From: Takakia lepidozioides
Taxonomy: Eukaryota > Plantae > Bryophyta
DNA length: 64,000 nt
NCBI GenBank assembly: GCA_030704615.1
Contig: CM060732.1
Coordinates: forward strand, 33,604,001 to 33,668,000
Direction: 5' to 3'
In this document: positions 1,413-51,120 of the stretch, piece by piece
Position numbering within the stretch: the first letter of the stretch is position 1
Layout of the letters: every line of letters begins with the position of its first letter
Program-made: the position numbers and the translations under genes
Notes under the pieces: model-generated
Seen by the model: only the letters and a program-made list of their open reading frames with translations
Told to the model about the DNA's origin: nothing
The model's database searches: none

Positions 1413-1789
1413 TATAGGTTATGCACATGGGGCAAGGCACAAACTCCCAACCACTAGGCTACCTACTCCAATGCAGGGGACACTAAATTTGTGAAGAACA
1501 TCTACAAAAGGTAGGAAAATGTGGACGACGTGCAAGCATAGGGATCTTCTACATAATTCTGTTGGATAGCGGCTGGCTGGTGTACTTTTGAAAGGGCATG
1601 TTGTACATGGCAATTTGTAATTGGCAATTGACATAAACCTTCCAAACATAAGTTCATTGCATGGTGTTAGCGGAAGGTTCATGTGAATAATGTGGCCATC
1701 AATGATTCTTTATTTCATGTTGGGATGCTCGATTATGCTAGGTGAGGTGAACAAAGAGAGAATGAACACCTAAGATTATGTGTTTGTCA

Positions 1790-2035
1790 AGTCAGTGGGA
1801 ATGACTCACCCAAACTGCCAAACTTGGGATCCAAGATTATGAGATAGGAGGTCAACTTATACTTTGCTAACCAAAGTCCAATATAGATTGAATGAGCATT
1901 TCTAAAGTGATAATACATATCATTGAATATTGTTCGCTCATGGCTGATGCCTTCGAAGGTGTATATACAACGAAGCATTTTTCTCTCTCTGGGTGTAGGA
2001 TGAGGACTTTTGACACCTTGTGACGGAAGCAACTA
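1790..2035. repeat. Dispersed repeat, copy A (paralog at ~13437-13672); host site of the chromovirus insertion
   Basis: agtcagtgggaatgac(t/c)cacccaaac..ccaaacttgg..tc.aagattatgagat ... tgtgacggaa.caacta aligns by eye with 13437-13672. Confidence 0.8.
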
Positions 2036-2059: not shown

Positions 2060-2773
2060 TGTCGCGCACCTCACTTCGGTAAGCTCCCCTTCACGTCATA
2101 GTTACTCGCTTTGATGCGCGCGCCTAACTCCCAAACTGGCCACCGGGCCAACTCGGAGCTTTGGCTGCTCACCGTGACATAACGGTCCCCCTTTGCTCCT
2201 CCACAAGACCCTCGCTCACTTTGGGCCTAGTGGAAATTCCCTTTGGTTGTTGGCAGTCCGGAACAGTTTGGTCGCTTTCCGGCTCGCACGCTTACTCACT
2301 AGTTTTTGGTCACCAACGGGCTTGCACCGTTCTCGGGGTTACTACTCCCTATATATACTTCTGTGACTATCCGCGGGGGTTTCACAAACAACACCGTCCT
2401 TTTATGGAGAACCACCACGAAGACCCTTGACTCCCGGTGATGAATCGCGGTGAGTTTTGGCCCACCCACCACGGCCCCAATGGACTGTGATGAGTCCCAA
2501 GACTCCCCACAACTCCCACCACAAGGTCTCCGCCCCATGGTGAGTCCTACGCCACCCCCACTAAGACCCACTAAGCTACCACCACCCCTCGTGGAACCAC
2601 CCCCACCGCAACCCGGTGTGCGGGGCTCCACCTAGTGAGCGCCTCCGCCTCCTTGAGTGCCTTGGGCACTCAGGGTGCTTCAGCCCCCGTACCTATTGTT
2701 ACCACTGCCCCCACCACAAGGGCAGCCCCTCTTGTGTCCCGACCCCTTGCCCTCAAGGCAAAGGGTTGCGACA
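2060..2773 (-). repeat. 3' LTR of chromovirus (714 bp)
   Basis: Begins tgtcgcgc, ends gcgaca. Near-identical to 8129-8852. Confidence 0.95.
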
Positions 2774-3541
2774 CACACCCCTACCAACAGATAGTCGATG
2801 TCCTCATCGATTTGTCCATTTTGTAGAAACTACCATCCAAGTTGTGGTGTCCCACATCAAGGAGTTTGTTTCCGTACCATGGCGTCCCATGGCAAAGAAC
2901 CAAACCCTCACTTGACTCTACTCTCCACTAGCTAGTTCGGCCGACTTCCTCCAATTCCCGGCCAAGGGTGGAGCCTCTCCAGCTCCACCCAGTGCACTCT
3001 TCTTGGGCCACTTCAAGGCCAAGGAATGATCCTCCTCGAGGATCGAATCACCTTACTGCAACAACATTGCTTGCGATCGCTCATGATGCCGCTTTTTGGC
3101 ATCACATTGAGCAAGGGTTCACCTTGAACCTTTTTTGACTAGGAAGATAACCTTGAACCAACCGTGCGCCCCAACCACTATAATTGGGTCCGCCTTGGAA
3201 TGCTGGCCTAAGATACAGGAACACGCCGAAGCCGCACTACGACTTCGTCCCGAGGTTACACGATTATAGTACGTGAACGGAAGCACGTAGCTTCCGCGTT
3301 AGCCCGCACAACAAGACAACCCCCTCGGTAGCGCAGTTATAGTATGCGCACGCGCCAGGTGCGCACTAGCATGTGAACTCCCAAAGAAGGCGCAAGTTTC
3401 CCTGTCCCTTGGATGGGAGGCACCCGATTTTGGCACTGCGTAAACACACGATTAATCCAATTTACCTCTCCCAATTTTGTAAGCTAGCATGCATTCTACA
3501 CACTAGCCAACCATACCATGCATCACCATTCAACGTCCCCA

Positions 3542-5038
3542 TCAACGCTTCTTCCGCTTCTGAGGTCGCCCTTCGAAAGCTGCAACCGCCTCGGATACGT
3601 TTCCCATTTCTGAGGCACATACCCAAGTTGCCTCCACTTGATGATAGCCCTTCCATTTCACGAGATACTTCGTTTCTCGATTCTTGAACCTCCTCGACTT
3701 AAGCACTGCCTCCACCTCGTATTCAGGTTCATTTTCATGATCCAACATCGCAGGTGGTGGACGCAACACTTGATGCCGATTCGGACGCGCTTCATCTTTG
3801 AAGTAAGGCTTCAAAAGGGAAACGTGAAATATCAGATGCACCTTGCTGTTTGCCGGCAGCTCCACTTCATACACATCCTCATTCATAACCTTCCGGATGC
3901 GAAAAGGGCCCGCATATGGAAGTACGAACTTTGGACTCACTACCGGAGGTAGTCGAAAATTCTTGATGTTCAACCAGACCTCCGTGCCTGCCTCAAACTT
4001 AATTTCCCTCTGCTTCCGATTTGCCTGCCGTTCATACCGTTTCCTAGCTTTGGCAATGTTATACTTTGCAAGCTCCAACAAATGTTTGCGTTCTTCCAGC
4101 ACCGTTGCTACTGCCGGTTCCTCAATGCCCTGGGCGGCCCAACTTGTCGGCACCAGAGGTGCTTTTCCATAGACCAATATGAAAGGGGAAACTCCCGTTG
4201 CGGAGTGTTTTGTGTTATTATAACAAAACTCTGTCGCATCAAAGTGCTCCACCCAGTCTGACTGGTCTGCCGACACATAATTCCGCAAGATCTGCTTCAC
4301 CGCGGAATTCACTCTTTCCGTTTGGCCATCCGTTGTAGGTCGGAAGGCCGTGCTCATCTTGAGCCACGTCCCCGTTTTCTTCCAAAGTGTCCTCCAAAAT
4401 TTACTTGTAAACTTTGGATCGCGGTCCGAGACAATATCCTTCGGGAGTCCATGATGCTTGAAGACGTGGGCGAAGTAAAGTCGTCCCGTCTCCTTGGTGG
4501 GGATGAAATGGCCCATTTTACTGAACCTATCCACCACCACCATGATTGCATCGAATCCTTTTGACAGTGGCAAAGCAGTCATGAAATCCATCGAGACACT
4601 TTCCTAAGACCCCTTTGGAATTGGCAAGGGTTGTAACAGCCCCGCTTGTTTTTTGTACTCGCTCCAGTTTTGTTGGCATGTGGTGCATGTCTTGACATAC
4701 TCCTCGGCCTCCTCCCTCAGTTTGGGCCAGAAACACTTTTTCTTCAAGAGTGCCGCGGTGCGCTTGGCTCCGCCGTGGCCCGCAAGCGGGCCATCATGGC
4801 ATTATCTCAAGAGACTATCTCTGATCCCTCCCTTCGGCACGTAGAGACGTTTTTGTTTGTACCGGAGCAGTCCATTGTGCAAGTGGAACTGCGATTTAAC
4901 CCCCAACCTCAAGTCTTGCATCACGGACTTCGCCATCTCATCCTTCCAGTGAGCCTTCCGGATCTTCCTTTGGAGAGCCGTCTCGCCCCTGTACACCAAC
5001 ATGAGCTGCTGCTTTCTACTTAAAGCATCGGCCACCAC
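3542..5038 (-). pseudogene. Integrase + chromodomain (disrupted)
   Basis: MDF...VVDRFSKMGHF, SDRDPKFTS, DGQTERVN, YAGPF motif, and chromodomain YEVEAVLKSRRFKNRETKYLVKWKGY...ATW. In-frame stop near 4604 and a frame change upstream. Confidence 0.93.
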
Positions 5039-5059
5039 GTTATCCCGTCCCGGTTTGTA

Positions 5060-6475
5060 CTAGATATCCACGTCGAACACTACCAAAGTGTCTTGCCACC
5101 TAAGTTGTTTTGGGGACAACTTAGGCTGTGTGGCAAAATACTTCACTGTGACATTGTCCGTGAACACCTTCACCGGGTTAGAACCAACATAGTGGCGCCA
5201 AAGCTCAAGGCAATGTACCACCGCCTTCATTTGCGTAGGCCATCGTCGCTCCACTGCATTCAGTTTCTTACTTTCGTAAGTCACTGGACGTCCATCCTGC
5301 ATGAACACACCCCCAATTGCGAAGTCCGACACATCTGTATGAATCTCAAATGGACGGTCGAACTCCGGGATTTTCAGGACTGGAGCTTCCGCCATCCGCT
5401 GCTTCAACTTGGCAAAAGCTTGGCCACAAAAGGTGTTCCATACCCATACCTTGGACTTATACAGAAGGTCCGACAGCGGCCCTGCGATCTTGGCGAAATT
5501 TCTCACATATTTTCGGTAATAGGAGGCGAGTCCTAGGAATGATCGCACTCCCGGGACCAAAGTCGGAGGCTCCCAGTCCAAGATCACCCTCACCTTTCTG
5601 TCATCCATTTTGATCCCATCATGTGTAATCACATGCCCTAGGAACTCCGCTTTTGTGACCCCGAATTCGTACTTTGAAGCTTTGGCATACAGCTTCCCTT
5701 CCCGCAATTTCTGGAACACCCGTTTGAGGTGCTCCAGGTACTCTTCCTTTGTTTTCGAGTACACCAAGATGTCGTCGATGTACACGATCACAAAGTCATC
5801 CAACCACTCCTGGAAAAGGCTGTTCATTAGCATGCTAAAGGTCGCGGGTGCGTTGGTGAGCCCAAAAGGCATCACCAAGAACTCATATGAATCATATCTT
5901 GTCCTGCACGCGGTCTTCTCCTCATCTCCTTCCGCCACTCGGATTTGATGGTAACCTGAGCGCAAATCGATCTGGCTGAAATACTTTGCTCCTGCCAACC
6001 GATCGAAGAGGTCGTCGATCCTTGGCAGAGGGTACCGGTTTTTTATAGTCACCTTATTCAGAGCCCTGTAATCAACACACATCTGCAGCATCCCATCCTT
6101 CTTGTCTGTGAATAGCACGGGGGCTCCGTCAGGTGACTTACTCGGCCGGATGTACCCCTTTGATATTAGATCCTTGAGCTGGGCCTTCAGCTCGACCAAC
6201 TCTCTGTGGCTCAACCGGTAGGGCGCCTTGGCAGGCGGCTCTGATCCCGGTATCAACTCTATCTTATGGTCAACTCCTCTTCGCGGTGGCAAGCCGCTTG
6301 GTAAATCCTTTGGCATCACATCCTGATATTTCTCCAAGATCCCTTTGATCCAATCTGGGCTCGGCTCCCTATCGACTTCTCCTTCCACTTGTCTTACGTA
6401 AAGCAAAAACTGGGGCTTGTGTGGCTCCTCCACGGCCCACTCCTTTGCTGATAGCAGGTTTATTTGCCCTCCCAC
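5060..6475 (-). pseudogene. Reverse transcriptase + RNase H of chromovirus pol
   Basis: [50 protein letters not shown]. Confidence 0.95.
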
Positions 6476-7900
6476 TCAGTTGGGTGTTTCCGATACCCGT
6501 AAAACTTCACCACCATTCCCACACGGTAGCGTGACTATTCTCTTGCGGCCATCTATGACCGCTCCGGATTTGCTCAAAAAGGTCATCCCCAAAATGAGAT
6601 CCACTCCATCGATCTCTCAAATGGTGAAGTTCTCACGTCCCTCCCAAGCCCCGAGCTGAAGAAGAACATCGAACACCAACCTCGTCGCCAGTTGTGGTTC
6701 TCCTTTGGCAGAACGCACTTCAATAGAGACCCCCACATCACTTGTTGGGAGCCCCAGCTTCCGTGTCGTTGCCGGTGTCATAAGGAGTGCGACGTTCTTG
6801 TGTCCACCAACAACGACAAATTAGTTCCGGACATTATCCCACTCACGAACATTAACTGACTCCCTTTACGCAAGGGGCCAGTCTCCTGATACAACTCACA
6901 AGCGTAGTTGCCTACCTTGCAAGTTTTGGCGACTACCGCCTCCACCAAGCGGTTGATGGACTCTTCGGACAGCTCCGTGGTCGCCCGAGTTATGTTCAAT
7001 TGTCGGGGTTTCGCGCACTTCTTGGCCATGTGCTCGGGCTCCCCGCAATTAAAGCACACTCCATCGAATGTCGCCTTCTATCCGCCATAAGCCGCCACAC
7101 CTAATTTTCTTTTCGGAGCACCAAGTGCTGCTTTGACGTGTGAAGGCCCTCCCTTCGATTTCCATGTGCCATTGTCGTCGCGTGGCCTATCCCACTTCTT
7201 TTCCGGTCGGAAGGAGTCACCCTTCCGCCGGGCCTTATTGTGGTTCAGCTCCGTACGGCCTTGTCTTTCGTCCCTAGGGACATCCAAGAATCATTCAACC
7301 CTTTCAATTGCCTCATTCAAAGTCTTGGGTGGCTTCTCCTCCAACTTCCGCCTGGACCATATGGCCATTCCCGCCACAAAGTTGAAGACCATTTCTGGTT
7401 CCGCCATATCTGCGACCTCAAGCAACAGCACATTGAAAGCTTGAACATATCCCCGAATGTCATCCGTTTGCTTCAAATTCCTCATCTTATCCCGGGTGAG
7501 CCAGGACGTGTTGAGGGGAATAAACTGTCTTTTCATAAGTTCCTTGAACCCACTCCAGTTCAAGGTTTCTGGGTTTGGACATTGGTCATTAAGGCGTTTC
7601 TGCCACCATTGTTGAGCATAGCCCCTCAAATAGGTGGGAGCCACTTCCACCCGATCCTCGTCACTTAACTTGGCCGCCCGGAAGTACTGCTCCAGCTCCA
7701 AGAGCTAGGTGTTGAGTGCCTTCTGATTTCGGACGCCCTCGAAGGTGTCAGGTTCCTTAGGCTTCACCTTAAACTTTGCCTTAGTGGAAGTGGCATTAGC
7801 CGCCATCACGTCTTTCAACGTCCCGCCAAACTGCGCCAACAACCCTTTCCAAAAGGCTGTTGGCATGGGAGACATCTCTTGGTGTGCCGGAGCCTCCGGG
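6476..7900 (-). pseudogene. Gag (retrotransposon gag domain, CCHC knuckle) and aspartic protease, disrupted
   Basis: ELEQYF...YLRGYAQQWW...W..FKELMKRQF; CFNCGEPEHMAKKC; degenerate protease site LVDTRTSHSL; several stops. Confidence 0.88.
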
Positions 7901-8114
7901 AAGTCCTCGGGCTTCGACTACCCAAATTCCTCCCGTTCTTGAGCGGCCTCGCTTTCAGAAGCATAAATCGCCTATTCCAATTGCCGCTTCGGTGACACGT
8001 CGCCTCCAGCGGGCTCACCAGGATCATCATCTTTCGGGCCGTTCCGCTTTCGTTTTGTCTTGCCCGACCCCATGATGAGGCCGATCTCAAGGACGATCGC
8101 GTACTGAACTCTAA

Positions 8115-8126
8115 GCTCTGATACCA
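8115..8126 (-). other. Primer-binding site complementary to tRNA-iMet
   Basis: TGGTATCAGAGC, 2 nt inside the 5' LTR boundary. Confidence 0.93.
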
Positions 8127-8128
8127 AG

Positions 8129-8852
8129 TATCGCGCACCTCACTTCGGTAAGCTCCCCTTCACGTCATAGTTACTCGCTTTGATGCGCGCACCTAATTCC
8201 CAAACTGGCCGCCGGGCCAACTCGGAGCTTCAGCTACTCACCGGGACATAACGGTCCCCATTTGCTCCTCCACAAGACCCTCGCTCACTTTGGGCCTAGT
8301 GGAAATTCCCTTTGGTTGTTGGCAGTCCGAAACAGTTCCCCACACCTTGGTCGTTTTCCGGCTCGCACGCTTACTTACTAATTTTTGGTCGCCAACAAGT
8401 CTGCACCGTTCTCGGGGTTACTACTCCTTATATATACTTCTGTGACTGTCCGCGAGGGATTCACAAACAACACCGTCCTTTTATGGCGAACCACCACGAA
8501 GACCCTTGACTCCCGGTGATGAGTCGCGATGAGTCTTGGCCCACCCGCCACGGCCCCAATGGACTGTGATGAGTCCCAAGACTCCCCACGACTCCCACCA
8601 CAAGGTCTCCGCCCCATGGTGAGTCCTACGCCACCCCCACTAAGACCCACTAAGCTACCACCACCCCTCGTGGAACCACCCCCACCGCAACCCGGTGTGC
8701 GGGGCTCCACCTAGTGAGCGCCTCCACCTCCTTGAGTGCCTTGGGCACTCAAGGGTGCTTCAGCCCCCATACCTATTGTTGCCACTGCCCCCACCACAGG
8801 GGCAACCCCTCTTGTGTCCCGACCCCCTGCCCTCAAGGCAAGGGCTGCGACA
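8129..8852 (-). repeat. 5' LTR of chromovirus (724 bp)
   Basis: Matches 2060-2773. Internal end mutated (ta instead of tg at 8129). About 10 bp of extra sequence near 8338-8347. Confidence 0.95.
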
Positions 8853-9269
8853 GAACATGCTTTGAGTGTCACCTAGTCTACATCCCAAATTAAGAAGCAT
8901 CCAAAGAGAAAACCCTAGTCGAAGTCAGCCTAAATAAGAGCCACTTCCCTACCAACCGGGAATTGCCCGCCCTCAAATTTTCGGTAGCCACATTGAGTGT
9001 GGCTCCCTGGTCCCCACTAGCGCAACTCCCCAGGCCCCACACGCCTAGGGCCGCCCCACTTCATGCCCTTTTGCTCGCCAAAATTAATCTTGCTCACCAA
9101 CCCTCTCAACACTTGGTGGGCCCGCCTTTATCTAAACGTGCTCGGTCTGCCCTGGCCCATCCCCTCCGCATTTTTGGTTTTGTAGAGTATAAGTTAGGGT
9201 TGTTTGGAGAGTGCAAGTTTTGAACATATGTTTTTCTGTCTATTAATGTTTCTTTGAAAAGAATAGGAA

Positions 9270-10110
9270 CAATCTCCAAGCTACCCATCAAACATATGCA
9301 AAATAATTATATAGATTTTATGCAATCTGAAAAATGACAAGAATAACCTTTCGGAGGCATGTTCGATTTTGTAGCAAATTTCCAGTTAACTATAAGACTA
9401 ACCATCGGGTTGGTACCCATCAAACATGATAGAGACAACCTTCCATAAGAAAAATATATTTGTTCGGGTTTACGCAATCTGAAAATGACATGAACAACCT
9501 TCCGCAGTATACACTCAGATATATGGATTGAGCAATTTTAAGATTGACGTGAACAACATTCGGGCAAGTACCCATCAAACATGACTCAATAGTAGAAACA
9601 ACCTTCTGTAAGGTATTTAACATATTTGTCTGTATTTTTTACAATTTACAAAATGATAGGAACAATCTTCCGGAGGGTACTCTACCAACATGTTTGAATT
9701 GAGCAATTTTAAATTGACTTGAACAACCTTTTAGTAGGCACCCATCATATATGACTCAATGGTAGAAATAACCTTCTATAAGCCTTGAGGTACATTTAAC
9801 ATAATTGTTTGGGTTATATAAGAAATAATGTGAACAATCTTCCGGAGGGTATACCAACATGTTTGGATTGAACAATTTTTTTTGTAGCATGTACCCATCA
9901 AACACGACTCAATGGTAGAAATAACCTTTTGTAAGGTAAAAATATTTATTTTGGATTTTATGCAATTTGAAAAAATAACAAGCACAACCTTCCGGAGAGT
10001 ATATTAACATGTTTGGATTGAGTGATTTTAAAAAACGGTCATCATCTTCCAGCAAGTACCCATCAGACATGATGCAATGGTAAACATAACCTTATAGACG
10101 GTAAAAACTA
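9270..10110. repeat. Degenerate AT-rich tandem array, ~6 units of ~130-170 bp
   Basis: Anchor acccatca..cat recurs near 9283, 9415, 9570, 9740, 9893 and 10058, with aaccttc / ttccggag / ggattgagc motifs between. Confidence 0.75.
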
Positions 10111-10789
10111 TTTGTTTGTATTTGACCAAGCTATTTGAGTGATGGGTTGAGTTTTCTTGCTTCTGCCTCCCACATAGAAATATGATATGGTATCAGGCTA
10201 GCCAACTATCGTGGAAATTTCAAACCAAACAACATTATTTTTATTAGGGTCCTTTGTATGTGTTTGAGGGGGGGGTCAAAATGACTGCCATAGCTCAGCA
10301 ATTCAAGGTGAGCCCATTCCAAAAATTGACCCATTAATAACGAGATGTTTTACTCAATCCCTCTGGTGAGGGTGTGGAATACACTACAATAATGAGCCTG
10401 GTCAAAACAAATTCTAGATCCAAGGGTAGAAATTACAAAAATTAATAATGTTATAAACCTAGATAATCTACTTTATTGTATCTAAGCTTGAATGATTCTT
10501 GAGCCATATGAGGGCCACATTGTTGTTGTATGAACAAGCTCTTCAAGCCAACTGACGGCTACCCACAAAAATGAAAATAGAGAGAAGAGAGATTCATGTG
10601 TTTGAGAGTTATTGGAGGGTCCACAATCAAGCTTATCTCCATGTAGCCCAAAGTTCTACAGATTGGAGATTGAATTCTATCACGGAGGAATATTGGCTAA
10701 TGCATTCGAGGTAAATACATGTAGTAGTCTTGACTGACCTAGTTTAGGGGTCCATGCATAACATAAAATCTGTGGATATGTGAAGAAGA

Positions 10790-13029
10790 TTGAGCGACAT
10801 GACAATGAATATCATCACTCGCATAGTGCTTGGGAAAAAATGGTTTGGAGTAGAGACGACTACTGAGGAAGGTCAAGAGTTTAAGAACCTAATTGTAGAA
10901 CTTTTTGACCTCGTTGGTGCTTTCAACGTTGGTGACTCCATTCCATTCCTAAAGCCTTTTGACCTACAAGGCTATGAAGCCCGCATGAAAAAAGTTGCTG
11001 CAAGCATGGATCGCTTCTTTAGTATGATGATCTTCAAAAAGATGGAAAAAAAAAATCAAACGCCCAAAAAGACCTTGTAAATGTATTATTGTCTATTGCT
11101 GGAGAGGAAGGTGTGGAATATAGGCTTGACGACTCTTCTATGAAATTACTCATGATTGTAAGTATATTCATCTCCTCCACATGTATTCATATCTTTTCTT
11201 TGAATGTAAGTTGTCTAGATGGTGAGTTTATGTAATGAAATTTTCTCAAAACTGTTTAAAGGTTGGCCATTATCCATTCGGCCTCTTGATTGAAAACCTA
11301 GATCATCAAGAAAGTGTAGATGTGATTCTCAAGCATATAACAACCATGTTCTACCTCATGACGAAATGAATAGATTTGGCAATGTAGATAAGATGGATCG
11401 CATAATACCCAAATCAACAAACAGAGGTAGACATGACCCACCATTAGATGAAATATTTGAGCACATGCCAAATACTCGAAAGTGGCAAGAATTTACTCAT
11501 TGATCTAGCTGTCGACATGTTTCAAAACCCTTTTAATCTGTCATTGTCACAAATCACATATCATTCTTTGATGACTTTCTTGGATTTGAATTGCCTCTCA
11601 CGATGGCGGAGCGCCCTTAGGGTAGGGGTCGAATATCTAGGAAAGTCATCGATAAAGACCGTGTGTGGATATCATACACCTCCCCTTCGTTAGGTAAGAA
11701 TTCCATAGCCTAGCTTTGACACGATTTGCCTATGTATCAAAATTAACTTTCATCCTACAAAATTTATGATTATACTGGATAATATTATTAAAACTGGATA
11801 ATAGTGGATGTGTAAGCGTGCCATATGCTGCCTATATGCCTTACAGCCTCATTAGGATTTGGAGGTTACAAGTGATATTGCTCTTTAGGTACCAATTTAT
11901 TATTATTATTATTTCCCTTGAACTCCTATCTTTCTATCCTGACCAAGCAAGGATAAGATGGTTAGTCAATCTTCTTTAGGTAAGTTTATTGTTGGCCTAT
12001 CATGTTGTACCTAGCCTAAAAATGATTTGACACCTTCCAAAACCGTAGTGGTAAGTAGAAATAGAAACAATCTACATAACTTTTACGAAAATAATTCTTA
12101 TCCAACATGATAGACCATCAGGGTTCGAGATATACAACATAGATTCTTGGAATTTGAAACAGAAATAGTCTAAAAATCATGACCAAATTTGTATTTTTTC
12201 TCATTTATTCATTGGTAAATGTGTGCACCACAAATAGGTCATGTACCACAATCATTGGGGGCTTCTACAATCTGCAATTACTATCTGGAAGCTCTAACAA
12301 AGCTACAAAGTCAACAGGTCTTTACTTCATAGAGCTCATTAACTCTTAAATGCACACATAGACTGGTTAAAAATACTCAAGATGATATGTCTCATCATGT
12401 CAATTGTTGATGCATGATATTATTTCGGGGGGCACTGACCCATCAGCAACAACCATAGAATGGGCGCTCACACATCTCTTGCAACATCCCAATGCAATGA
12501 AGAAAGTTCAAAAGGAGTTGGATGACGTGATTGGGTGTGATAGGTTGGTGGATGAAGCCGACATTCCTTGCCTCCCTTACCTTCAGGCAGTTGTGAAGGA
12601 GACCCTACGCATCAACCCTCCAGCTCTTTTCCTGCCGCATGATAGCATTAAAGCTTGCCAAATAGCAAGCTACCAAAGACACTGACAATGGTAAATGTAT
12701 GGGCTATTTATCACAACGCATGTGTTTGGCAGAAGCCTCATGAATTCATTCCGGAAAGGTTTGACAACAGTAATATGGATGTAAAAGGCCAAAATTTTGA
12801 GCTCTTGCCATTTGGATCAGGACGACGAAGTTGCCCAGGCTTGCCTTTGGGTTTGATTACGGTTCAAAGGGGTCTGGTTCAACTACTCCAAAGCTTTACA
12901 TTCGAGCTTCCAGAATGCCAACATCCCCAAGACTTGGACATGAGTGAGGTCTTTGGGCTCACGACTCGAAGAGTTGTTCCATTGCAAGTTGTCGTGAAAG
13001 CTCGTTTGCCTCATCATTTCTATACTTAA
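10790..13029 (+). pseudogene. Cytochrome P450 pseudogene (CYP71 clan), 5'-truncated; exons ~10790-11157 and 12416-13029
   Basis: I-helix GGTD.SATTIEW, K-helix ETLR, PERF, heme motif PFGSGRRSCPG. Donor GTAAGT at 11158 at the usual A-type intron position; acceptor reads TGCAT instead of TGCAG (12411-12415). Frameshifts near 11030-11080 and ~12670. No N-terminal half visible. Confidence 0.92.
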
Positions 13030-13224
13030 TTACTTAGTATTCCCACACATGGTTTATGTCGTTTGATATCTACTAGTAGCTGATTTGATAGCTACTAATA
13101 GCTGATGTGGAGCATTCACAATTATTGATGATGAGTTGTCTCTTCACATGTATTGTGTTCTTACAAACTTTAAGTACATCTACAAACTTTAAGATTCAAT
13201 TCAATGAACTCGTGAAATCTTGTA

Positions 13225-13430
13225 CTGCAATGTGCATATCATGCGATCATCACATTCCAGGACACCACATCTTGTTCAATCATATTGTCAAACACTCATT
13301 TTGCATATTTAATCTCCGAAATTGGGTGAGTATTAGGGCCTAAGTGTTCAGAACGACTTTGACAATGTCACATGCAGCATTGACTCCTTGCTTTTTTTCA
13401 GGTCTGTCAAGCTTGCACACGCATTACGTG
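13225..13430 (-). pseudogene. PLS-type PPR fragment
   Basis: Minus strand reads AK*VFDNMIEQDVVSWNVMIA*YAH, the same motif family as 36727-44510. Confidence 0.75.
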
Positions 13431-13436
13431 TTTGTG

Positions 13437-13672
13437 AAGTCAGTGGGAATGACCCACCCAAACCGCCAAACTTGGAATCTAAGATTATGAGATGAGGTCA
13501 ATTATACTTTGCTCACCGAAGTCAAATACAAACTAAGCAAGCATTTGTAAAGTGATAGTACACGTCATTGAATATTATTCATGGCTTACGTCTCCAAAGG
13601 TGTATACACAACGAAGCATTTTTCTCTCTATGGGTGTCTGGGGGTGTTGGCATCTTTGTGACGGAAACAACT
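13437..13672. repeat. Dispersed repeat, copy B (paralog of 1790-2035)
   Basis: Direct sequence similarity to 1790-2035. Confidence 0.8.
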
Positions 13673-14267
13673 ACTTATATTTAATATCCTTTGCATTATC
13701 CAATGTATGTCATTCGACTTTGATGTTGACGTTTAATGAATTTTGAGTCTCACAAAGATAATTTTTGATTCATTGATTCACAATATTATAATTATTTGAT
13801 TTAATTTAAATACAATTTATATTAAATTTTATCTAGATTTAAGCTAGAAGTCCAGAATTACTTAAAATTGAGTTTTAAGCTTGCGTTGATGCAAGCATAA
13901 AAAAGGTCCCCCTGAAAGAACTCATCTCCAAACTTGTTCTACATTTGCACTGTATGACTAAAGTCAAAGGGATCTTGTGGAGCAAGGGGGGGGGGGGGGG
14001 GGGTGTGAAGCTTACGTTGATGCAAGAACCGGAACTAGAACCCCTTCCAAGGTCTCATATCCGCGCATCAGAGAGACAGACGAGACCCTCCAAAGGGTGC
14101 AAGTTTTAGCTTGTGATCCTCTACAATGAGGTTATATGTTCCTTTTGTCATCAACCTCTTTTTAATTCAGTTCCAGTGCTTCCCAAGTGGTTTTCAAAAC
14201 AAAAAAATACAAACAAAAACAAGTTTTAGTATTATTTTTATCCAATAATAGTACTATAAAAAATTAG

Positions 14268-14636
14268 TGTAGATATTTTACAAAATAACTATATGTCAGA
14301 AAAAATAATTGTAAGTATTTATGAATTCCTTTCATATGCACCTACAATTCAAAATTATCCCTTCAAATAATCTTAATAAATTTTCCAGGGCACCATCCCC
14401 TGTTCTAAAAATTAATTAATTAATTAATTAAAAAAGCACCACAATTTATGGCTCTCAATTAGATCACGTTTGGACCAATGTGCCTCACTGGTATTATTTA
14501 TATTGTATCAAACAAAAGCATATTATTGGACATACCATAAACCTGTATTTATTGTTTTTAAATTTCCTAACAATATTCTTTGCTACTGGCAACATATCTC
14601 ATCAATTAAGAGGAGCCATCACGCGATGAGCCGCTT
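14268..14636 (+). mobile_element. Helentron relic 1: C-terminal EEP endonuclease fragment and 3' terminus
   Basis: FMNSFHMHLQFK..TTIYGSQLDHVWTN...AYYWTYHKPVFIVFKFP. Terminus gaggagccatcacgcgatgagccgc matches those at 49141-49167 and 50075-50105 (-). Confidence 0.75.
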
Positions 14637-14948
14637 ATTGTTGGCTATCATGTTGCACCCAAAAACAATGATTTGACACCTTCCAAAACCATGGCAGTAC
14701 ATGTTTATACCACAAATGTAATGTATCGCAAGCATGGGGGCCGGCTTCCACAATCTGTAATTACAACGCTGAGCCTTTTGGAAAAAACATATAATTTTTC
14801 CGACGGATCAATTCCTATCTAGAAGCCCTGGCTGATGCTAACAAAGCCACAAAGTCAATAGGTCTTTACATGATTCATAGAGCTCGTCAACTCTTAAATG
14901 CACAGATAGACTAGATAGACTGGTCAGAATACTCAAGATGATTTGTCT
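14635..14948 (+). repeat. Diverged duplicate of the 3' part of the CYP intron (~11986-12392)
   Basis: Shared blocks ttattgttgg.ctatcatgttg, atgatttgacaccttccaaaacc, and aaagtcaa.aggtcttta...aactcttaaatgcaca...atactcaagatgat.tgtct. Confidence 0.8.
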
Positions 14949-15610
14949 GGGGCGTGCTAGATTGTGAGCAGCTCACGTGAGCAGAAAAAACTGTGAGCAA
15001 GATTCTGCTCACAGTTTTCGCCCCATTGCCGTGGACCTGTACCTGTTGGAAGCCCTATTACCGTGGGCTTCAAGCGTCGAAAAGTGAGCATTGTTTTTTA
15101 AGAGTGAGCCTGCGGGTTAGCAGCAACATTGTGGAGTGGTTGATTGATGTTTGAGTGTGTTTTGAAAAGGAGTTGGATGAAAGGAGTGGATAAACGATGG
15201 ATGAATGTGCGCTGAGAAACGATGGATGAAAAAAAGAGTGGATGAATGAAAACGACAAATTCAGACCGGGGACCGCTAAAGGAAGCCTGAAATCACATCT
15301 TCAAACATGCAAGGCAGGGAAATTGGTGCTTCATAAATGTTTGTATTAAAACAAATGAGTCATTCCGACAAGACACTTCCACTGCTATCTGATTTTGAGC
15401 CCAAAACTGATGCAGAACTGTCCATAAAGATACTAGCCCTGCTCTGCACAAAACCACCTTTGTCGCGGACCACAACAGGGGGAGATGAGAGGAGACGAAT
15501 GTGCCAGATTAAGGTGGCGTTGACGCCACCTTAATCTGGCTGGTCTTTTGGGTTGGAATTAAGCTCCAACATTGGCTGGGAATTAAGGTGGCATTGACGC
15601 CACCTTAATG
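14949..15610. mobile_element. Probable DNA-transposon end rich in palindromes
   Basis: aaaactgtgagca-6nt-tgctcacagtttt (14987-15018); 18-bp perfect arms at 15503-15540; related palindrome at 15582-15609. Begins exactly where the CYP-intron duplicate stops. No TSD found. Confidence 0.4.
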
Positions 15611-16904
15611 CCGAGCTTGTTTCCCTCTACTCGGCTCAAGTTTTAGGGCTCTAGCATCTCATAATTAGCCGTGAATTAGCCATTGAAAGGCTTGTTCTAC
15701 GTTGATCATTATTCCTCCGAACTCTGCTTCCTAACGCATCTCTACTATTCAGCCTCTCACGCTTAGTGTTGTGTAGACATCCTACATGACAACACCTTCA
15801 CTCGTCACTAATTCTGCATACTCTGTTTACAAATGCTAGAACCCTCACTTATGCTCCTGGATTTGTGGTCACGGGGTGGTATCCCCACTGTAAGCCTTCA
15901 CGGCCCAGGGTGGTTATTTTTTCCACTTATTCTAATATATTACTAGGGCCTATGTCCCCTGTTCATTATATATATATATATATCAAAATAAGTTCATGTC
16001 AAATATAATATTCTTCCTACCGTAGTGTCTATCCGATGATAATTATATCCAAATATATATATATATATAAACAGACTGCCAGAAAAATTGAGTTAAATTT
16101 TTTCCAATATCGGATCTTAGACATATTTGTGTGTTGCGGGACAAAGATTCCAAAAAGCATGCGAGACCTCTTCTTCAAGAAAACTTAATTAGTCCGGTAG
16201 GGCATGACGAATAACATGGGCAAATACGATATTTATAGAATGACGAACTAAGGGCCTGACCTTTTCTACTAAATCTAGTGGGAGTTTTTCTAATGAGCTT
16301 GTAATTATTTAACATTGTTTTGAGCAAATATATATTAACTTCTGATTTTTTATTCATCAATGATCGTATGAATTATCTAACATCCAATATAATATCAAAA
16401 TTTTATGTTTAGACTACTTAAAATATATTAACTTTAGGAAAGCTTATTTTTGAGTGCTTGGAAACATTGTTTTGAGCGAATATATTTTGATTTACTTCAT
16501 TATATACATAATCTACTTTAAAATAATATCAAATTCTATGTTTAGATGTTTCAAGTATATTAACTATGTGTCTAAGCAAAAGAATATTTTGGCAAAATGT
16601 TTTTTGAGCCAATGGCTGAAAACATTGTTTTGAACAAATATATCCACATCATAACATTGGGCCATCTCATGTACATACTTGCCACAATCACCACATCATG
16701 CACGGTGTAGATTCCACCTAGATCGTGAAACCTGAGAAATACAAACTATTTACAAGTGCAAAGAGGTACGTACTTTGATCTAGGGAGGCTAGAAGCCAAT
16801 GTTAGTATATGTGCTATGGTAAACTATTTTTTTAAAATAAAATACAATCAAAGATAAAATATTTTTATATTTTTATATTTTAAATAAAAGGAATGAAACA
16901 CCAA

Positions 16905-44179: not shown

Positions 44180-44510
44180 GATGACAAGTTGCATCCCAGA
44201 ATTAAGGAAATCCATGCTGACATGAGAAGATTGTCTGGGCAGATGAAGGAGGCGGGGTATGTGCCTGACACGCGCTTTTTATTGCATGATGTAGAGGAAA
44301 GGAATTTTCTCTTAGCCACTACTGTGAGAAGCTGGCCATTGGTTTTGGGCTGATCAACACGACTCATCAAGAATCTTCGAGTGTGTGGAGACTGCCACAC
44401 CTCCACCAAATTCATCTCAAAGATTGTTGGGCGAGCAATTGTTGTATGGGACGCTAACTACTTTCCACCACTTTGAAGATGGGATTTGTTCTTGTGGTGA
44501 TTACTGGTGA
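44180..44510 (+). pseudogene. DYW cytidine-deaminase domain, inactivated
   Basis: GYVPDT, CGDCH and DYW* present. HxE motif reads HYCEKLA. PG box deleted relative to the sibling at 40030-40090. Frameshifts. Confidence 0.9.
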
Positions 44511-45705
44511 AAGGATGTTTCCTTGGAAAGACGCTAGTGTCTTGCTTTATTCATTGATCTGTGTAGCTACTCAGACCATCCACCATTTCCTGATAGTGGG
44601 GTCTACTCAGCATAGGTAGGAAGTCAGTCCACAATTGCACTTGACTAAAGGAGTGATTTTTGACAAATTCTGGTGACAGTGGATGGAAATTAGAGTGCTA
44701 TCCTAATTCTGGGTTTGGGTGGTGGAGCTTCTCCAAAGCTTGAAGATGGAAGTGAATACAAATTTTAATGAGCTTGATGAGAGGGGCAGCCCTGTGCACA
44801 AGTTTGTTCAGCATCTTAAATTTGGATATGTTTGTTTGTTTCTCGTGGTGTGGCTTTGGATGGAGCCCTTGGTGAACTTACATGAATATTGTCAAAAGCT
44901 AGCGTTAATCCACCAAGATCCATGCTTGGAAGTTCATATAGTGAATGTAAGGGTATTTGGGTATGTTGATATTGATTTGATGTGGCTTGTGAAAATTGAA
45001 CATTGAAATGCAGATCCGCCATTTTTCTTCCAGAAAAAAACAAAACACGGGATCTTTGCATGTAACACAGTGGGGATGACCCACCCTTTTTTTGTGAAAA
45101 ATTGAACGTAGTTCTCAGAATTCGTCGCTAGTAGTGCGGAGCAACGCGAAGCCCTAGTATATTTTTGGCAAACTTTAAGCAAGTGCGTGCCAAGGACATA
45201 TAGCGGTCAATTTCGGGTGCTGACAATTTTTTTTTAATACAGCAGTAAAATGGATGGAAAAGTTGACTGCCAATGAAGAAGGTGGCAGTGTTGGGGGTGA
45301 ACCACGTAAGGGTATTGGGGCTGACATAGTAAACTTACAGATCTTTTCTATTTTTAGCCAAATAATAAATAGTTTTTTCGGTGGATGTAATGGCATATAA
45401 TTTGGGGCCATGTAAGGGTGTTGGGCTTGGGCATGTTTAACTCCCACCCTTGCTATTAGTGGAACTCAGTACACCGCATGGGGTCAGGGGCAGGTGGGTA
45501 AGTGCAAGGCCCAGTACATGCAACTCTTGCACCTTTTCTATTAGTACATAAGAACTATTTTCAGTCAGTGGATCAAGTTGTAATCTTTAGCAGCTAAAGT
45601 TAGATGGTCCATCCTTAAGTTAGACAATCAGTCCTTCAGATATAAATATTATACTTAAAAATATTTTGTTATTCAATATAAAATAAAACAATAAAACCAA
45701 CATTG

Positions 45706-45930
45706 AAGTTCGGACTTCAGCAGCTCAAAGTCCGAACTTCAGCGTTAAGTATAAGATTGAACAAAAACCAAAATATAACCCAACGCTCAAGTCCGGACTT
45801 CAGCGTTAAGTATAAGAGTGAACAATAAAACCAAAATATAACCCAACGCTCAAGTCCGGACTTCAGCGTTAAGTATAAAATTGAACAAGAAAACCAAAAT
45901 ATAACCCAACGCTCAAGTTGGACTTCAGCA
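45706..45930. repeat. ~62-bp tandem repeat (~3.5 units) with near-palindromic core
   Basis: Unit aaaaccaaaatataacccAACGCTCAAGTCCGGACTTCAGCGTTaagtataa..tgaaca. Confidence 0.9.
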
Positions 45931-46259
45931 GTTTAAGTAATCAGTTAATATTGTAGATATAATTAATTAATTATGACTCATAAATACCCCACCCATATCT
46001 CATTATGTTCTTTTGTTTTGACCTCGTATTTTTCTTAGTTGCAAAGACAGAGCATTTAATGTGCACATGGTGCAAAACTCTTGACCCGTGAGCTTTCTTC
46101 AGTGACTGTTAACACATACCAAAAGCTTAACCCCTGAGCCTTGTTCGCTGGCACTTCACACATACCAAAAGCTTTGGCACTTGTGAGTATAAATCCTTCA
46201 TTTTGCTCACCATCTGCTATCATCTTCTTTCTTTCTTTACTCTAGTTTTTATGCTTGCA

Positions 46260-47594
46260 ATGGCACTTAGAAAGACTCGTCCGCTTCTTACTGTTGATGA
46301 ACTGGACTATAGTATATAGGATTCCAGGTTTGAACGCTTTGTTTTGAGTAGATACGGGAACTCTGATAAACTCCCTGGTGACTCTCCATGATAATCATTC
46401 TTGCATGCTGATGTAATATATAAGCATGCAAAAACTGTAACTGTGACCATCAGTGGCCCCCTTCTCAAATCTCACTCAGCCAGCTTGGTGAAAGGGCATA
46501 CATTGTGCATAGAAAACTTTGCTTTGCGTCCAAGAGCAAAGTTGGAGAAAGGCGTCACTGAGGTAGCAATCCGAATACATTAGCCACAACTATCCCGGTT
46601 CTGCTATCATTTGACCCAACTGTGCAGCTCAATTTTTTTTCGAACGAGAGCATTACCGACTTTGTTGCTCGCACTTCTGAGAAATTTACGACTTCCACGA
46701 TTTCTGTATGATGATTGAAGTTAGAGGCCAGATCGACAACAGACATGAACTCAAAGTGGCAGATGGTATCAAACCAGAAGATATTCAAATTGTAAGGGTT
46801 CTTATATTTTATAGTTTTATTTTTATTTTCACTTTATTTAATGTTGTGACTACTTGTTCATTGATTTTTTACTGTATTTTTGCAACTACCTATTCATTCA
46901 TTTTCTTTTGTATTTTTGCAGCTGAGTTTCACTCCGACATTTCAAGATGAATATGAGCGGCTTGCATCTACATTCAGGACTGGAGTAGTAGCAATTGTTG
47001 TTTTCAAACATATTGCAGCAAGTCAGAGTCGGAACCTCCGTTTGATTACATCGTCCAACACTATTGTGGCTCCAATTGTTGATCGCACCAAACGAACTGA
47101 GTTAGATGATATTTTCACACAATTGACATTGGAGACAGATCAGGGTACGTATTATATATTTTTAAATATTTTATTGATCTCAATTTCCCTCCAAAGATCT
47201 TATTTATTGTTGGTGGAATATTCAGATCATTAGAGTTTTCTCTATTTCCTATCCGGCTCGGCCTCCTTTCAAACGAGTTTGCGCCAACTGCCGAATGCAT
47301 GATATCATCCTTCAATCTGAAGGTGGATTGTATTTTTGTAATACATGTCAAGCCACATATGCTTGTGCGCTTCATGGATGTATTAATGGCTGCATAATAT
47401 CCAGTGATGCGAAAGTTGATTGTCAAGTGAAAGGAGAGTGGTTGCAAGCCATTGTAGGATTTAGTGAGGCTGATTTATTAATTGCCCACAAAGAAAACCG
47501 TGCATTTGTTGTAAGCCGTCTTTCCAAAGTCCATTTATCTGGGACTTTCCATCTGAGCCTCATTTCTGAGCTTACTGGACTTGATCATGTTTAG
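46260..47594 (+). pseudogene. RPA1 (RPA70)-like OB-fold ssDNA-binding gene with two introns (46792-46921, 47145-47225), disrupted
   Basis: OB-like LVKGHTLCIENFALRP...IRI. C-terminal zinc ribbon CANC-x15-CNTC. GT-AG introns. In-frame stops near 46318 and 46389. Confidence 0.6.
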
Positions 47595-48367
47595 TTATTG
47601 TTTACTCTATTTTGGAGCCACTGACACTTTTGCAGCTTTCAATTGTAAGAATTTTGCATAAGCAACTAATCATCATTCTACTATCTACTTTTTAATGTCA
47701 TCACACCTTTATGAGGGTTTCAAACCATTAGGTTTCATTGATCATTTAGTTCATTTACATATTCATTTAGAACTATTTTTTAAATATATGATGACATTCT
47801 GATTGTATCTTTGACTTGACAATATATATATATATATATATATATTACTATTCTGTGTTTATAATTTTGATTTTTTTTAAATAATTTTTAATTATTGCTT
47901 CTAACATCTATTCCACATTGTTTCAAGTGCTATACTCATTTTGTGAGGTCATACAGATTGACCATTATATTCAGTGATTACATTCAGTGTTATATTCAGT
48001 CCCTTCAGTTTTATCCCTTCAGTTTTATTTGTTTCATTCCAACCTCTAAACTATATCCCAAAACACACACAGTTTTTCTAGGCTTTACATCAAGAATTTC
48101 AATTAATTTATGATTATGTTGTATTTATACATATATTATTAAGTTCAAACTAAATTGATCATCCTTTTTAAATCATACATTTTTAGCCACACTTTTTTAT
48201 TTTTTATTTTTCAATGATTAAGATCAAAATTATTTATTTTATAGAGTATATCATAATTTGAATTACTGTTTTTATTATCTAATCTAATTATTACATAATT
48301 TTTTATTTAGTTTAATTTTTCCTTATTCTTGAGTTTTCACAGATACTTTATTTATAACCTTACCTCT

Positions 48368-48559
48368 ATGGATATAGATTTGGTCTTGCAACATGAACAT
48401 TTTCGACGTATACAAAACTACTCATATATTGTTGGTGATTGTTTGTTTGATTCTATTGTTTATTTACTACATTATTCTCAAACTGCTTCAATGTTGCGTT
48501 GTGGATGTATGACACATTTTACTCAATCTTTGCAAATGCCCAATGACAAAATAAATTAA
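48368..48559 (+). pseudogene. OTU-like cysteine protease N-terminal fragment
   Basis: IVGDCLFDSIVYLL resembles the OTU catalytic-Cys motif (GxCLFxS/A). Truncated. Confidence 0.45.
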
Positions 48560-48564
48560 ATATT

Positions 48565-49000
48565 TTTGGTGCACAATACATAGCAGTAATTTTTAATATA
48601 AATATAAGAAAAAGTTTCCATGTTGTTACAGTATATAGACCTCCATCTCTCTCATTAAATATGTTTTTATTTTATCTTAAAATAATTCTTCATGAAGCCC
48701 CACAATTTTGTCCTACAATCATCAGAAGTGATTTTAACCTACATATTTTACAACATATCCAGGGCCACTGCCCCTGTTATCTAAAATAAAAATAAAAATA
48801 AAAAATAAAATCTTCATCATCAAAATAATTATAACAATTTATGAATATTTATCACATGAAACTCCAATTTACCAAACCTACTACTATATATGGTTCACAA
48901 CTTGATCACATTTGGACAAATGCTCCAAACCAACAATGTATATGTGGAATAATTGGAGCGATCACACATCAATATTTATTGCGTTTAAGGTACCTAGTCA
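48565..49000 (+). pseudogene. EEP (AP-type) endonuclease domain
   Basis: In order: VVTVYRPP, IIRSDFN (GDFN), PTTIYGSQLDHIWTN, and WSDH after a frameshift. Confidence 0.82.
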
Positions 49001-50069
49001 TGTGCCTACATACATATTATTATAGTCCAAGAAATGATTAAATAACAAAAAAAAATTCTTCTACACTTATATTATTGCATAATTACATTACGTTTTACAT
49101 TTGTATAGAACATATGTTATTGGGATATTTATTTACAAGGGTGGAGCCATTACGCGACGAGCCGCGTGTTTTATTTTATTTGGAGCAGATGCATAACTTA
49201 ACTCACCCAATGATCAAAAATTTGTGTGTAAAGTGTGAACATGTGGGTCGAGCCTTTTTTCAATCACAAAGCAAAAGAAATTAGTGGACCAATTTTTAGG
49301 TGACGCATAGGCAAACTGGGTCTCCCCCTTCACGTGTTAACTTCTGATCATTCTAACTCCACTCATGGCTTGCATACTGACTGTATGTTGGAGACCATAA
49401 CTAAACTCAAATCTTGAGTACTAAGGTTTCATCTCAACATATATGTGCACAAGTCAAGCTTCATATTTGGAAATTCTCTTTCATTCATTGAATAGATTTG
49501 AAAAATACTTCTACTGTATTGGAAGCTACCTCATGTTAATCTTGGTTCTTCCTGCTTGGTGTGCAGGAAGGCTGGCACTTGGCAGAGCCCTACCGTGTGC
49601 CATGTGCAATCAAAAACTCGTCATATACTCTACACCACTTCATGGATTTCTCTTCTGTTGGGAAGTAGTTGACTGTCATTCCATGCAAAATCTTCAAACA
49701 CCCCAAAATAAAATGGTCACGTCTGAAAGCAACAACATGTCAGCCTAAGGCTTGGAAAGATACACTACCCTCACGAAGGCTGACACTCTCAGGAAGTATA
49801 ACCATCGGAAAGCTCACACATGCGGAAGATGACACTCACTCTATGACACCAAGCATGTACATGTAGAGCCATCCAACTCTCAAACACAGGGCAGATCATG
49901 CTATGAGATTATACCCTAAATTGGGTGTTTTTTCCAACGCTCTCAACCCAAGTATCACTGTTCATCTCTTGGCATTTGCAATGAGTCCTAGTAAAGATTA
50001 GAAGTTGCCCTTCCCCCAACAAAACAAATGAAATGGAATGAACTGGTACTTTGTAACGTCCCAAGACCA

Positions 50070-51120
50070 AACAAGTGCTCGTCTCGTCGCGTATTTGCTC
50101 CTCCTTATGGTGACTACCTATTAGAGTATTATGATGATATTACATGTTGGTAGCAAGGATTGTAATTAGGTAACTTAAAAACAATAAATACAGGTTTATG
50201 GTCCGTCAATATGCTTCCGTATAATTGTTGGTTTTTTCAGTCGACTTCGTAAAATATTAATATATGTGTCCATTTGTACATTAAATAATCCAATAAAATT
50301 TGTTGAATGAAATATTTGTATTAACATCCATTTTATTTAGTGTTTTAAATATATATGTTTTGCTATCTTTGCATATCGTCTTGTATCATTGTCATCTAAG
50401 TCTTGTTGAAAAGGTTCTAAAATCACAGTTGAATGCATAGGAGGTAATGGATAATGAAAACAACGTACTACTTGAATTTTTTCGTACAAGTTCGTTTATG
50501 TTGATGAATATAGATCATCAGGAGTTAGAATTGTAAATTATAAATGATATTATATAAGACATATATGATAAATAATAATAAAATCCTTAAGAATATATAA
50601 AATATTAAAATTTTGATTTTATAATATTAATGTTAGTAAATGTGAAATAGTATATAAATTGATGGATCTAAAGGACCTAAGGGAATCTAAGATCTGAAGT
50701 GTTGAACGTTGAAAACATATGGATATTAATAAACTGAAAAATATTTTAATACTTAAATATCTAAATTAAAACTATATTCATTTACATATAGATGTAACAA
50801 ATTAAAAAAGAATTGGAGATTGATAAATATGAGATTTGTTTGTATAAAATGAATATATTTAACTACAATATTTTTTCAATGATATAAAACAATTTCAAGA
50901 AGATAACAACAAATCAACAACAAATGAGTTTATAATATTTTATTTCATTTTTCTAAATATTGAAAATATCAATACGTTAAAGACTTAATGTATTGAAATT
51001 AATTTTTTAATAGTTATTAATTTGCAACTCAATTAATTTTTAAAAAATAGTTTTTCATTTGTATATAAACTGATGGATCTTAAGGGACCTGAAGGGATAT
51101 GAGATCTGAATAAACTAAAA
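50070..51120 (-). mobile_element. Helentron relic 3: Rep fragment joined by deletion to the EEP tail and 3' terminus (far boundary uncertain)
   Basis: Minus strand reads HQHKRTCTKK..CFHYPLPPMHSTVILEPF, then TYINILRSRLKKPTII, then EAY.TDHKPVFIVFKLP, then terminus ggaggagcaaatacgcgacgagacg. Confidence 0.75.

Follow-up and report, generated by a model that had tools for sequence, protein, structure and literature searches.

A heavily decayed, probably Helentron-derived deletion element in the genome of Takakia lepidozioides

Within a 64,000-nt stretch of Takakia lepidozioides contig CM060732.1 (33,604,001-33,668,000, forward strand; the whole stretch is called the window, and positions are counted within it), the segment from about 45054 to 49183 on the plus strand is considered to be a non-autonomous, heavily decayed internal-deletion derivative of an endonuclease (EN)-encoding Helitron-like element (Helentron, HLE2 group); judged from sequence comparison, this reading is given a probability of about 0.9. 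The surviving coding pieces are collinear with parts of an intact 14.4-kb Helentron family and carry stops and frameshifts, two of them meet at a deletion junction, and the motifs found at both ends of the segment recur elsewhere in the window. An earlier note on this DNA had proposed a Helentron at this place; the proposal is borne out in that each part is homologous to a coding part of the intact family, in the same order and on the same strand.

Intact members of the family were found in assembly ERZ25073694 through an exact-sequence cluster look-up of the open reading frames (ORFs) of locus L012. The polyprotein, P0093, is a 2117-aa protein with Pfam domains in the order OTU (24-130; 23.8 bits against a cutoff of 23.3, on residues 1-520), DUF6570 (525-629), Helitron_like_N (749-935), PIF1 (1402-1605), and Exo_endo_phos (1907-2072); DUF6570, a marker of HLE2-type transposases, is present in both P0093 and L012. 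The accessory protein of the family, P0057, has 281 aa. The locus of P0093, L017, is a 14.4-kb element (2103-16532) that is 98.7% identical to L019 (4278-18677) and 96-97% identical to L018 (6353-18503) and L012 (to 10804) over the shared parts. The family is a young, intact, and apparently active Helentron in an environmental eukaryote. It has an open 2117-codon frame, an accessory gene of two exons, tandem arrays inside the element, and cargo, part of which is a tRNA-synthetase fragment; its clusters hold 16 members for the accessory protein and 49 for an N-terminal piece of the polyprotein. The termini of L017, L018, and L019 feature a T-rich start and a 5' hairpin that encloses an 11-bp subterminal inverted repeat; at their 3' ends the repeat arm lies ~30 nt from the end, together with a small stem-loop and TTGTT. 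Rfam gave no match on six relatives' loci. The Takakia copy shares with this family the gene order and spacing, an intron position, the accessory gene (27-41% identity), and the OTU N-terminus (49%), and its 3' end is similar in plan (AGGAGG ... GAGCC ... TTGTT); however, the family is intact, contains a 5.7-kb 5' region with cargo, and has other terminal sequences, whereas the window copy is dead and 4.1 kb long.

The features of the window copy are the following:

45054-45090, plus strand: probable 5' terminus, with the hairpin-forming motif GTGGG-GATGA-CCCAC (CAGTGGGRATGACCCACCC motif) and, at 45076-45090, the 5' arm of a candidate subterminal inverted repeat; which base comes first is presumptive
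45703-45952, plus strand: tandem repeat found by repeat search, about four copies of a 63-bp unit with a palindromic core, upstream of the accessory gene
46260-46791, plus strand: accessory exon 1, decayed, with the first of the OB-like domains; P0057 residues 1-107 match 46260-46580 in tblastn, 41%, E 1.8e-12
46922-47135, plus strand: accessory exon 2; BLASTP of P0057 residues 178-249 against 46922-47140, 32% over 72 aa, E 2e-12
47226-47594, plus strand: accessory exon 3, closed by a stop codon, in which a beta-rich domain comes after a zinc ribbon; L017 accessory exon 2 matches 47238-47588 in tblastn, 27% over 117 aa, E 3.5e-14
47595-48367, plus strand: AT-rich spacer from the accessory gene to the polyprotein start (the interval includes the stop codon); 777 bp separate the final coding base (47591) and the ATG at 48368
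48368-48550, plus strand: polyprotein start, with an ATG and an OTU N-terminus bearing the GDC catalytic-Cys motif; BLASTP of P0093 residues 4-62 against 48374-48550, 49% over 59 residues, E 5e-17 (pairwise)
48551-48555, plus strand: deletion junction in the tblastn map, where polyprotein residue 62 is joined out of frame to residue 1965
48556-49025, plus strand: C-terminal ~150 residues of an apurinic/apyrimidinic (AP)-type (EEP) endonuclease with internal stops and one frameshift, recognised by library search, EN profile, P0093, and Pfam
49137-49183, plus strand: 3' terminal region, with a candidate inverted-repeat arm, the motif GGAGCCATYACGCGAYGAGCCGC (49143-49165) common to three copies, and a T-run ending TTGG

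The deletion is read from the polyprotein remnants. The motif IVGDCLFDS sits in an ORF at 48311-48556, and the alignment of this ORF to P0093 includes an 18/20 identical stretch around the catalytic Cys; Atlas also places it with OTU clusters at a score of 0.95. Only the first 59 residues remain, and their 49% identity to the OTU-bearing N-terminus of P0093 agrees with the OTU-like gene that the earlier note had recognised by its GDCLFDS motif. At the junction polyprotein residues 63-1964 are missing, which corresponds to ~5.7 kb and takes in the remainder of OTU, DUF6570, Rep, the PIF1 helicase, and the beginning of EN; in 45054-49183, tblastn queries taken from Rep, DUF6570, and PIF1 had no match. 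Because neither Rep nor PIF1 is encoded there, the copy is filed as a non-autonomous derivative rather than as an autonomous Helentron, and the internal deletion with loss of Rep and helicase that had been supposed is upheld.

The same ORF could be taken as the decayed N-terminal half of the endonuclease itself, in which case the polyprotein would have suffered no large deletion. An alignment that allowed for frameshifts, made against a profile built from 12 Helentron EN ORFs, did extend collinearly to 48292, with a gain of 12.2 against 1.3 +/- 2.6 for shuffled sequence (4/300 shuffles reached the observed gain; p ~0.013); however, the ORF gives no BLASTP alignment to the EN ORF P0005, it is grouped by Atlas with OTU clusters, and its BLASTP match to the OTU N-terminus of P0093 led to the rejection of this assignment, the chance of which is regarded as negligible. 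PDB sequence and profile searches for OTU returned chance-level matches only; word searches with EEP, zinc-ribbon, and OTU pieces were blank, and since these are limited by a length window the blank means little.

Beyond the OTU-to-EN junction the deletion derivative retains the end of the endonuclease. P0093 residues 1965-2085 align to 48556-48960 with 31% identity (tblastn, E 2e-14), the identity to the intact family as a whole being 31-39% in EN, and the profile of 12 Helentron EN ORFs scores 73.9 and 33.5 bits against the remnant. The ordered EEP motifs that had been reported here (YRPP, xDFN, LDHIWTN, WSDH) are all present: VYRPPS, SDFN, and LDHIWTN share one frame (48556-48960), and WSDH lies one frame off, which marks a frameshift. 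With this frameshift before WSDH and several stops in the EN part, added to the decay of the accessory gene, nothing in 45054-49183 can be functional and the locus is inert. Pfam on the EN piece gives Exo_endo_phos_2 at E 3.6e-4, below cutoff; over all stop-free pieces of the stretch it finds the sub-threshold EEP and the zinc ribbon, and nothing else.

The genomic company of related endonucleases identifies the type of EN. A search of the whole library with 48547-48786 returned 40 matches at E<=1e-3 (best E 8e-11, 35-49% identity), nearly all of them short ORFs from environmental assemblies. Six were inspected on their contigs (P0001, P0002, P0004, P0005, P0053, P0020), and in all six cases a same-strand PIF1 helicase lies immediately upstream: L006 carries Helitron_like_N, then PIF1, then the EEP ORF on one strand; L001, L008, and L009 are collinear with L006 from the helicase into EN; L011 carries PIF1 then EN, and L012 carries DUF6570, PIF1, and EN. 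No reverse transcriptase is found beside EN in the window or on the contigs of the six inspected relatives. The EN is assigned to the Helentron type because the inspected matches adjoin a PIF1 helicase and have no reverse transcriptase beside them, an arrangement opposite to the grouping with LINE (long interspersed element) ORF2 endonucleases, followed by reverse transcriptase, that the earlier note had named as grounds for abandoning its proposal.

A LINE (non-LTR) fragment captured or inserted beside an unrelated Helitron-type RPA gene would account for the EEP piece in another way. The sole Pfam match for this piece, Exo_endo_phos_2, carries the description 'Endonuclease-reverse transcriptase', and the Helentron EN itself descends from CR1-like LINE endonucleases (PMC4067079); against this, the helicase neighbours just described, the N-terminus of a Helentron polyprotein ahead of EN, the terminal motif repeated three times behind it, and the lack of a poly-A or LINE-type 3' tail make a LINE origin very improbable.

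The accessory gene upstream, whose exons were searched singly, is the second coding part shared with the intact family, and its homology to the Helentron accessory gene is solid at the sequence level; the first ORF of Helentron L012 also matches 46260-46580 (tblastn of L012 ORFs against the window, E 3e-10). Its two introns, at 46792-46921 and 47136-47225, are both GT-AG; the second, which precedes the zinc-ribbon exon, is conserved in position with L017, while the first is specific to the window copy and absent from the metagenomic relative. The gene is decayed: exon 1 contains three in-frame stops ahead of the one that closes its open stretch at 46581-46583, frameshifts lie between 46580 and 46711, and the coding phase is mismatched across intron 2. 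A CANC-x15-CNTC ribbon lies at about 47271-47339 within exon 3, and Pfam matches this exon to A2L_zn_ribbon at E 5e-4; the accessory exon of the relative matches CDC24_OB3 at E 0.0037, below cutoff. The succession of ribbon, beta strands, and a conserved G-x-W-L ... S-E stretch resembles the pattern of RPA70 DBD-C. AlphaFold models of the window zinc-ribbon exon and of the L012 accessory ORF reached pLDDT values of 34 and 31, respectively, and are unusable for fold comparison. The product is probably an OB/zinc-ribbon protein that would bind single-stranded DNA. Of the spliced, RPA1-like OB-fold gene described in the earlier note, the ribbon, the two introns, and the kinship with a Helentron accessory gene stand; the label RPA1 draws on the pattern and on the weak CDC24_OB3 match.

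That the accessory gene and the polyprotein start belong to one element is concluded from the spacer between them, which is of conserved length: 777 bp in the window and 770 bp in L017 (9231 to 10001). Upstream of the accessory gene, L017 has a tandem array of different sequence (7050-7445) at the same relative position as the window repeat. If two or more remnants had come together independently, as when a Helentron 3' end truncated on its 5' side lay beside or recombined with a separate copy carrying the accessory gene, the resulting mosaic would need to reproduce this distance, together with the order and strand of L017, and would have to yield an OTU-to-EN junction that is a single clean break within 5 nt. 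Some observations do lean towards such a mosaic: other truncated remnants lie in the window, one of which (copy 3) joins polyprotein residues 984-1072 straight to the EN tail, the GC content, about 0.38 across the accessory gene, drops to about 0.26 over spacer, OTU, and EN, and the ends are set by motifs rather than by empty sites. Weighed against the conserved layout, this composite origin is considered improbable, and the stretch is treated as one element with one internal deletion.

Both ends of that element carry sequences of a multi-copy family, three 3' ends and three 5' motifs of which lie within 64 kb. The motif GGAGCCATYACGCGAYGAGCCGC is found again at 14612-14634 (0 mismatches) and on the minus strand at 50079-50101 (4 mismatches); each of the three occurrences stands just after EN C-terminal sequence and is followed by a T-run ending TTGG, so the 3' end is placed at ~49183 rather than 49170. 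CTRR is absent from all three 3' ends, where a T-run and GG are seen instead, as the earlier note had observed for this copy. At the opposite end a hairpin-forming motif of 19 nt, CAGTGGGRATGACCCACCC, stands at 45068, 13441, and 1793, always on the plus strand, against 0.03 occurrences expected by chance; in two of the three cases it lies upstream of a same-strand 3' remnant. The regions from 13423 and 1775 onward are 81.7% alike over 260 bp and diverge further upstream; by homology to these copies, the 5' end of the studied copy is probably at ~45054-45057, about 390 bp from the 45441 that had been given as its start.

The inverted repeats that had been described as bounding the element are retained in part. 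The 3' arm (AAGGGTGGAG at 49138) lies within the real terminal motif of the three copies; the 5' partner at 45441, however, is unsupported, as it is not even the best match in a strict-gap alignment, and the arms GATGACCCACCCTT (45076-45090) and AAGGGTGGAGCCAT (49137-49151) pair better, matching at about 12/14 positions by eye. Searches for the inverted-repeat 5' partners of copies 2 and 3 gave chance-level matches only. The 3' stem-loop that had been noted does exist as a 5-bp stem at 49153-49169, but shuffled sequence folds equally well and the other two copies have not conserved it. A candidate long terminal inverted repeat between 45029-45088 and 49130-49186 beat 400 shuffles; part of this match is between an A-run and a T-run, which shuffling destroys, and the candidate is not relied on. 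When metagenomes were scanned for the 3' terminal motif, the matches were all GC-rich bacterial sequences hit by chance.

Several points weigh against the assignment of this locus to a Helentron family as laid out above. Rep and helicase are absent from the copy, so its class is assigned through relatives at 27-49% protein identity, and the layout of the parent is taken from the relative L017 rather than from an autonomous copy of the Takakia genome. The 5' end is placed by a 19-nt motif and by a collinear but weak resemblance to copy 2; the candidate subterminal inverted repeat has short, imperfectly matching arms in the count by eye given above, and when the 3' end is aligned under strict gaps with the 1.8 kb upstream, no inverted repeat exceeds chance. 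Lastly, the accessory protein is not recognised as RPA by Pfam or by PDB sequence and profile searches, the PDB matches being at chance level.

Read from the intact metagenomic relative L017, the parent would have begun with a hairpin 5' terminus and tandem repeats, followed by the spliced OB-fold/zinc-ribbon gene, whose product presumably bound single-stranded DNA, and a spacer of ~0.77 kb; the polyprotein, in the order OTU protease, DUF6570, HUH Rep, PIF1 helicase, and AP-type endonuclease, would then have led into a brief 3' untranslated region and a T-rich 3' terminus bearing a subterminal inverted repeat. A single deletion probably removed polyprotein residues 63-1964, after which neither Rep nor helicase could be made. 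If the copy moved after this event, it would have been mobilised in trans, through its termini, by the RepHel-EN of autonomous copies; transposition would have been rolling-circle ('peel and paste') into T-rich sites, presumably with TT as the target. Stops and frameshifts have accumulated since, and the copy is inert.

Canonical plant Helitrons (HLE1) resemble the window element in their rolling-circle mode and in an intron-containing OB-fold/zinc-ribbon gene; however, the features by which HLE1 is recognised do not fit it. HLE1 elements feature a 5' TC, a 3' CTRR with a hairpin, and insertion between A and T, and have RPA downstream of RepHel, without EN and DUF6570; the want of CTRR in the three 3' ends alone fails this description. 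The HLE1 hairpin stands about 11 bp from the 3' end.

To our knowledge, Helentrons were long held to be absent from land plants. The 2024 HELIANO survey overturned this supposed absence, listing HLE2 in 13 land-plant species of six classes and placing land plants among the hosts of HLE2 subgroup b, where the EN domain is concentrated, with little anatomy given for the plant elements (PMC11417382); the rarity in land plants suggested by the earlier note was therefore overstated. The survey also reports OTU and RPA upstream of RepHel in HLE2, with Pfam-defined RPA in subgroup a only (PMC11417382); the window element departs from this subgroup rule in that an unrecognised OB/zinc-ribbon gene accompanies an EN-bearing element. 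HelenSM92 from Sphagnum magellanicum, an HLE2 with a GIY-YIG domain (PMC11417382), is similar to the window element in its HLE2-type assignment, in its land plant host, and in its short terminal inverted repeats, which in the window element are a candidate pair; the window element, however, has OTU and EEP and not GIY-YIG.

The closest published description is that of Helentrons, HINEs, and DINE-1-like elements (Thomas, Vadnagara and Pritham 2014, PMC4067079), with which the family of the window element shares a RepHel polyprotein with a C-terminal AP endonuclease, an OTU protease, and frequent non-autonomous deletion derivatives, as well as a separate accessory gene, here a putative counterpart of the single-stranded DNA-binding (RPA-type) gene. 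The anatomy reported for Helentrons and HINEs comprises subterminal inverted repeats with a 5' hairpin nested inside, tandem repeats within the element, and ends rich in T (PMC4067079); the layout of the window element agrees with this, its subterminal inverted repeat being a candidate. It differs in its seed-free land plant host, in an accessory gene that has spliceosomal introns and is missed by RPA profiles, and in a 3' palindrome that is weak and not conserved.

Taken as a Helentron derivative, the locus confirms Helentrons in a seed-free plant, a kind already published for land plants since 2024 through HELIANO; the element is a well-resolved but dead addition to that kind. Together with the intact relative L017 it provides a concrete plan of the family, with an upstream OB/zinc-ribbon gene, an OTU-DUF6570-Rep-PIF1-EN polyprotein, and defined terminal motifs, and it points to HINE-like deletion derivatives arising from a Helentron family within a plant genome; for annotating such elements genome-wide, the terminal motifs offer a practical handle, as does the family of accessory proteins, which goes unrecognised by Pfam. 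As the nearest detectable relatives are young, intact 14-kb elements in an environmental eukaryote, it may be asked whether an authentic Helentron lineage with EN, established in a bryophyte-grade plant and possessing an OTU-RepHel-EN polyprotein and an intron-containing OB/zinc-ribbon accessory gene missed by RPA profiles, fits cross-kingdom horizontal transfer into or out of early land plants better than a purely vertical history; this combined reading is tentative and thought unlikely.

Three further remnants of the family are seen in the window. Copy 2 (13424-14644, plus strand), at 1.2 kb, looks like a complete short HINE-like non-autonomous element; it opens with the family 5' end (81.7% identical to 1775-2035), and an AT-rich middle leads to the final ~55 residues of EN (P0093 2059-2114) and a 3' motif free of mismatches. 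A hairpin motif, CCAGGG-N7-CCCTGTT, occurs at 48759-48778 in the studied copy and at 14385-14404 in copy 2 (0.01 expected by chance); its stem is kept and its loop varies, and its position relative to the EN coding sequence differs between the two copies. Copy 3 (50483-50079, minus strand) stands tail to tail with the studied copy and joins polyprotein residues 984-1072, which fall between Rep and PIF1, directly to the EN tail and the 3' motif; upstream of it on its own strand, 50500-51000 has a GC content of only 0.19. Copy 4 (1775-2035, plus strand) is a family 5' end cut off after ~260 bp by another repeat, as the adjoining 0.7 kb (2062-2773) is 93.6% identical to 8131-8852.

Upstream of the studied copy, a PPR gene with a terminal DYW motif stops at 44510, before the element. 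The stretch is present in four DNA sequencing runs of one sample; RNA-labelled runs of the same species contain next to none of the sampled words, which is not evidence of silence. Among the metagenomic relatives, the gene calls of L008 and L011 do not translate to their stored proteins under table 11, and the stored proteins are W-rich; in decayed Helentron ORFs the gene callers probably translated TGA as Trp, an annotation artefact.

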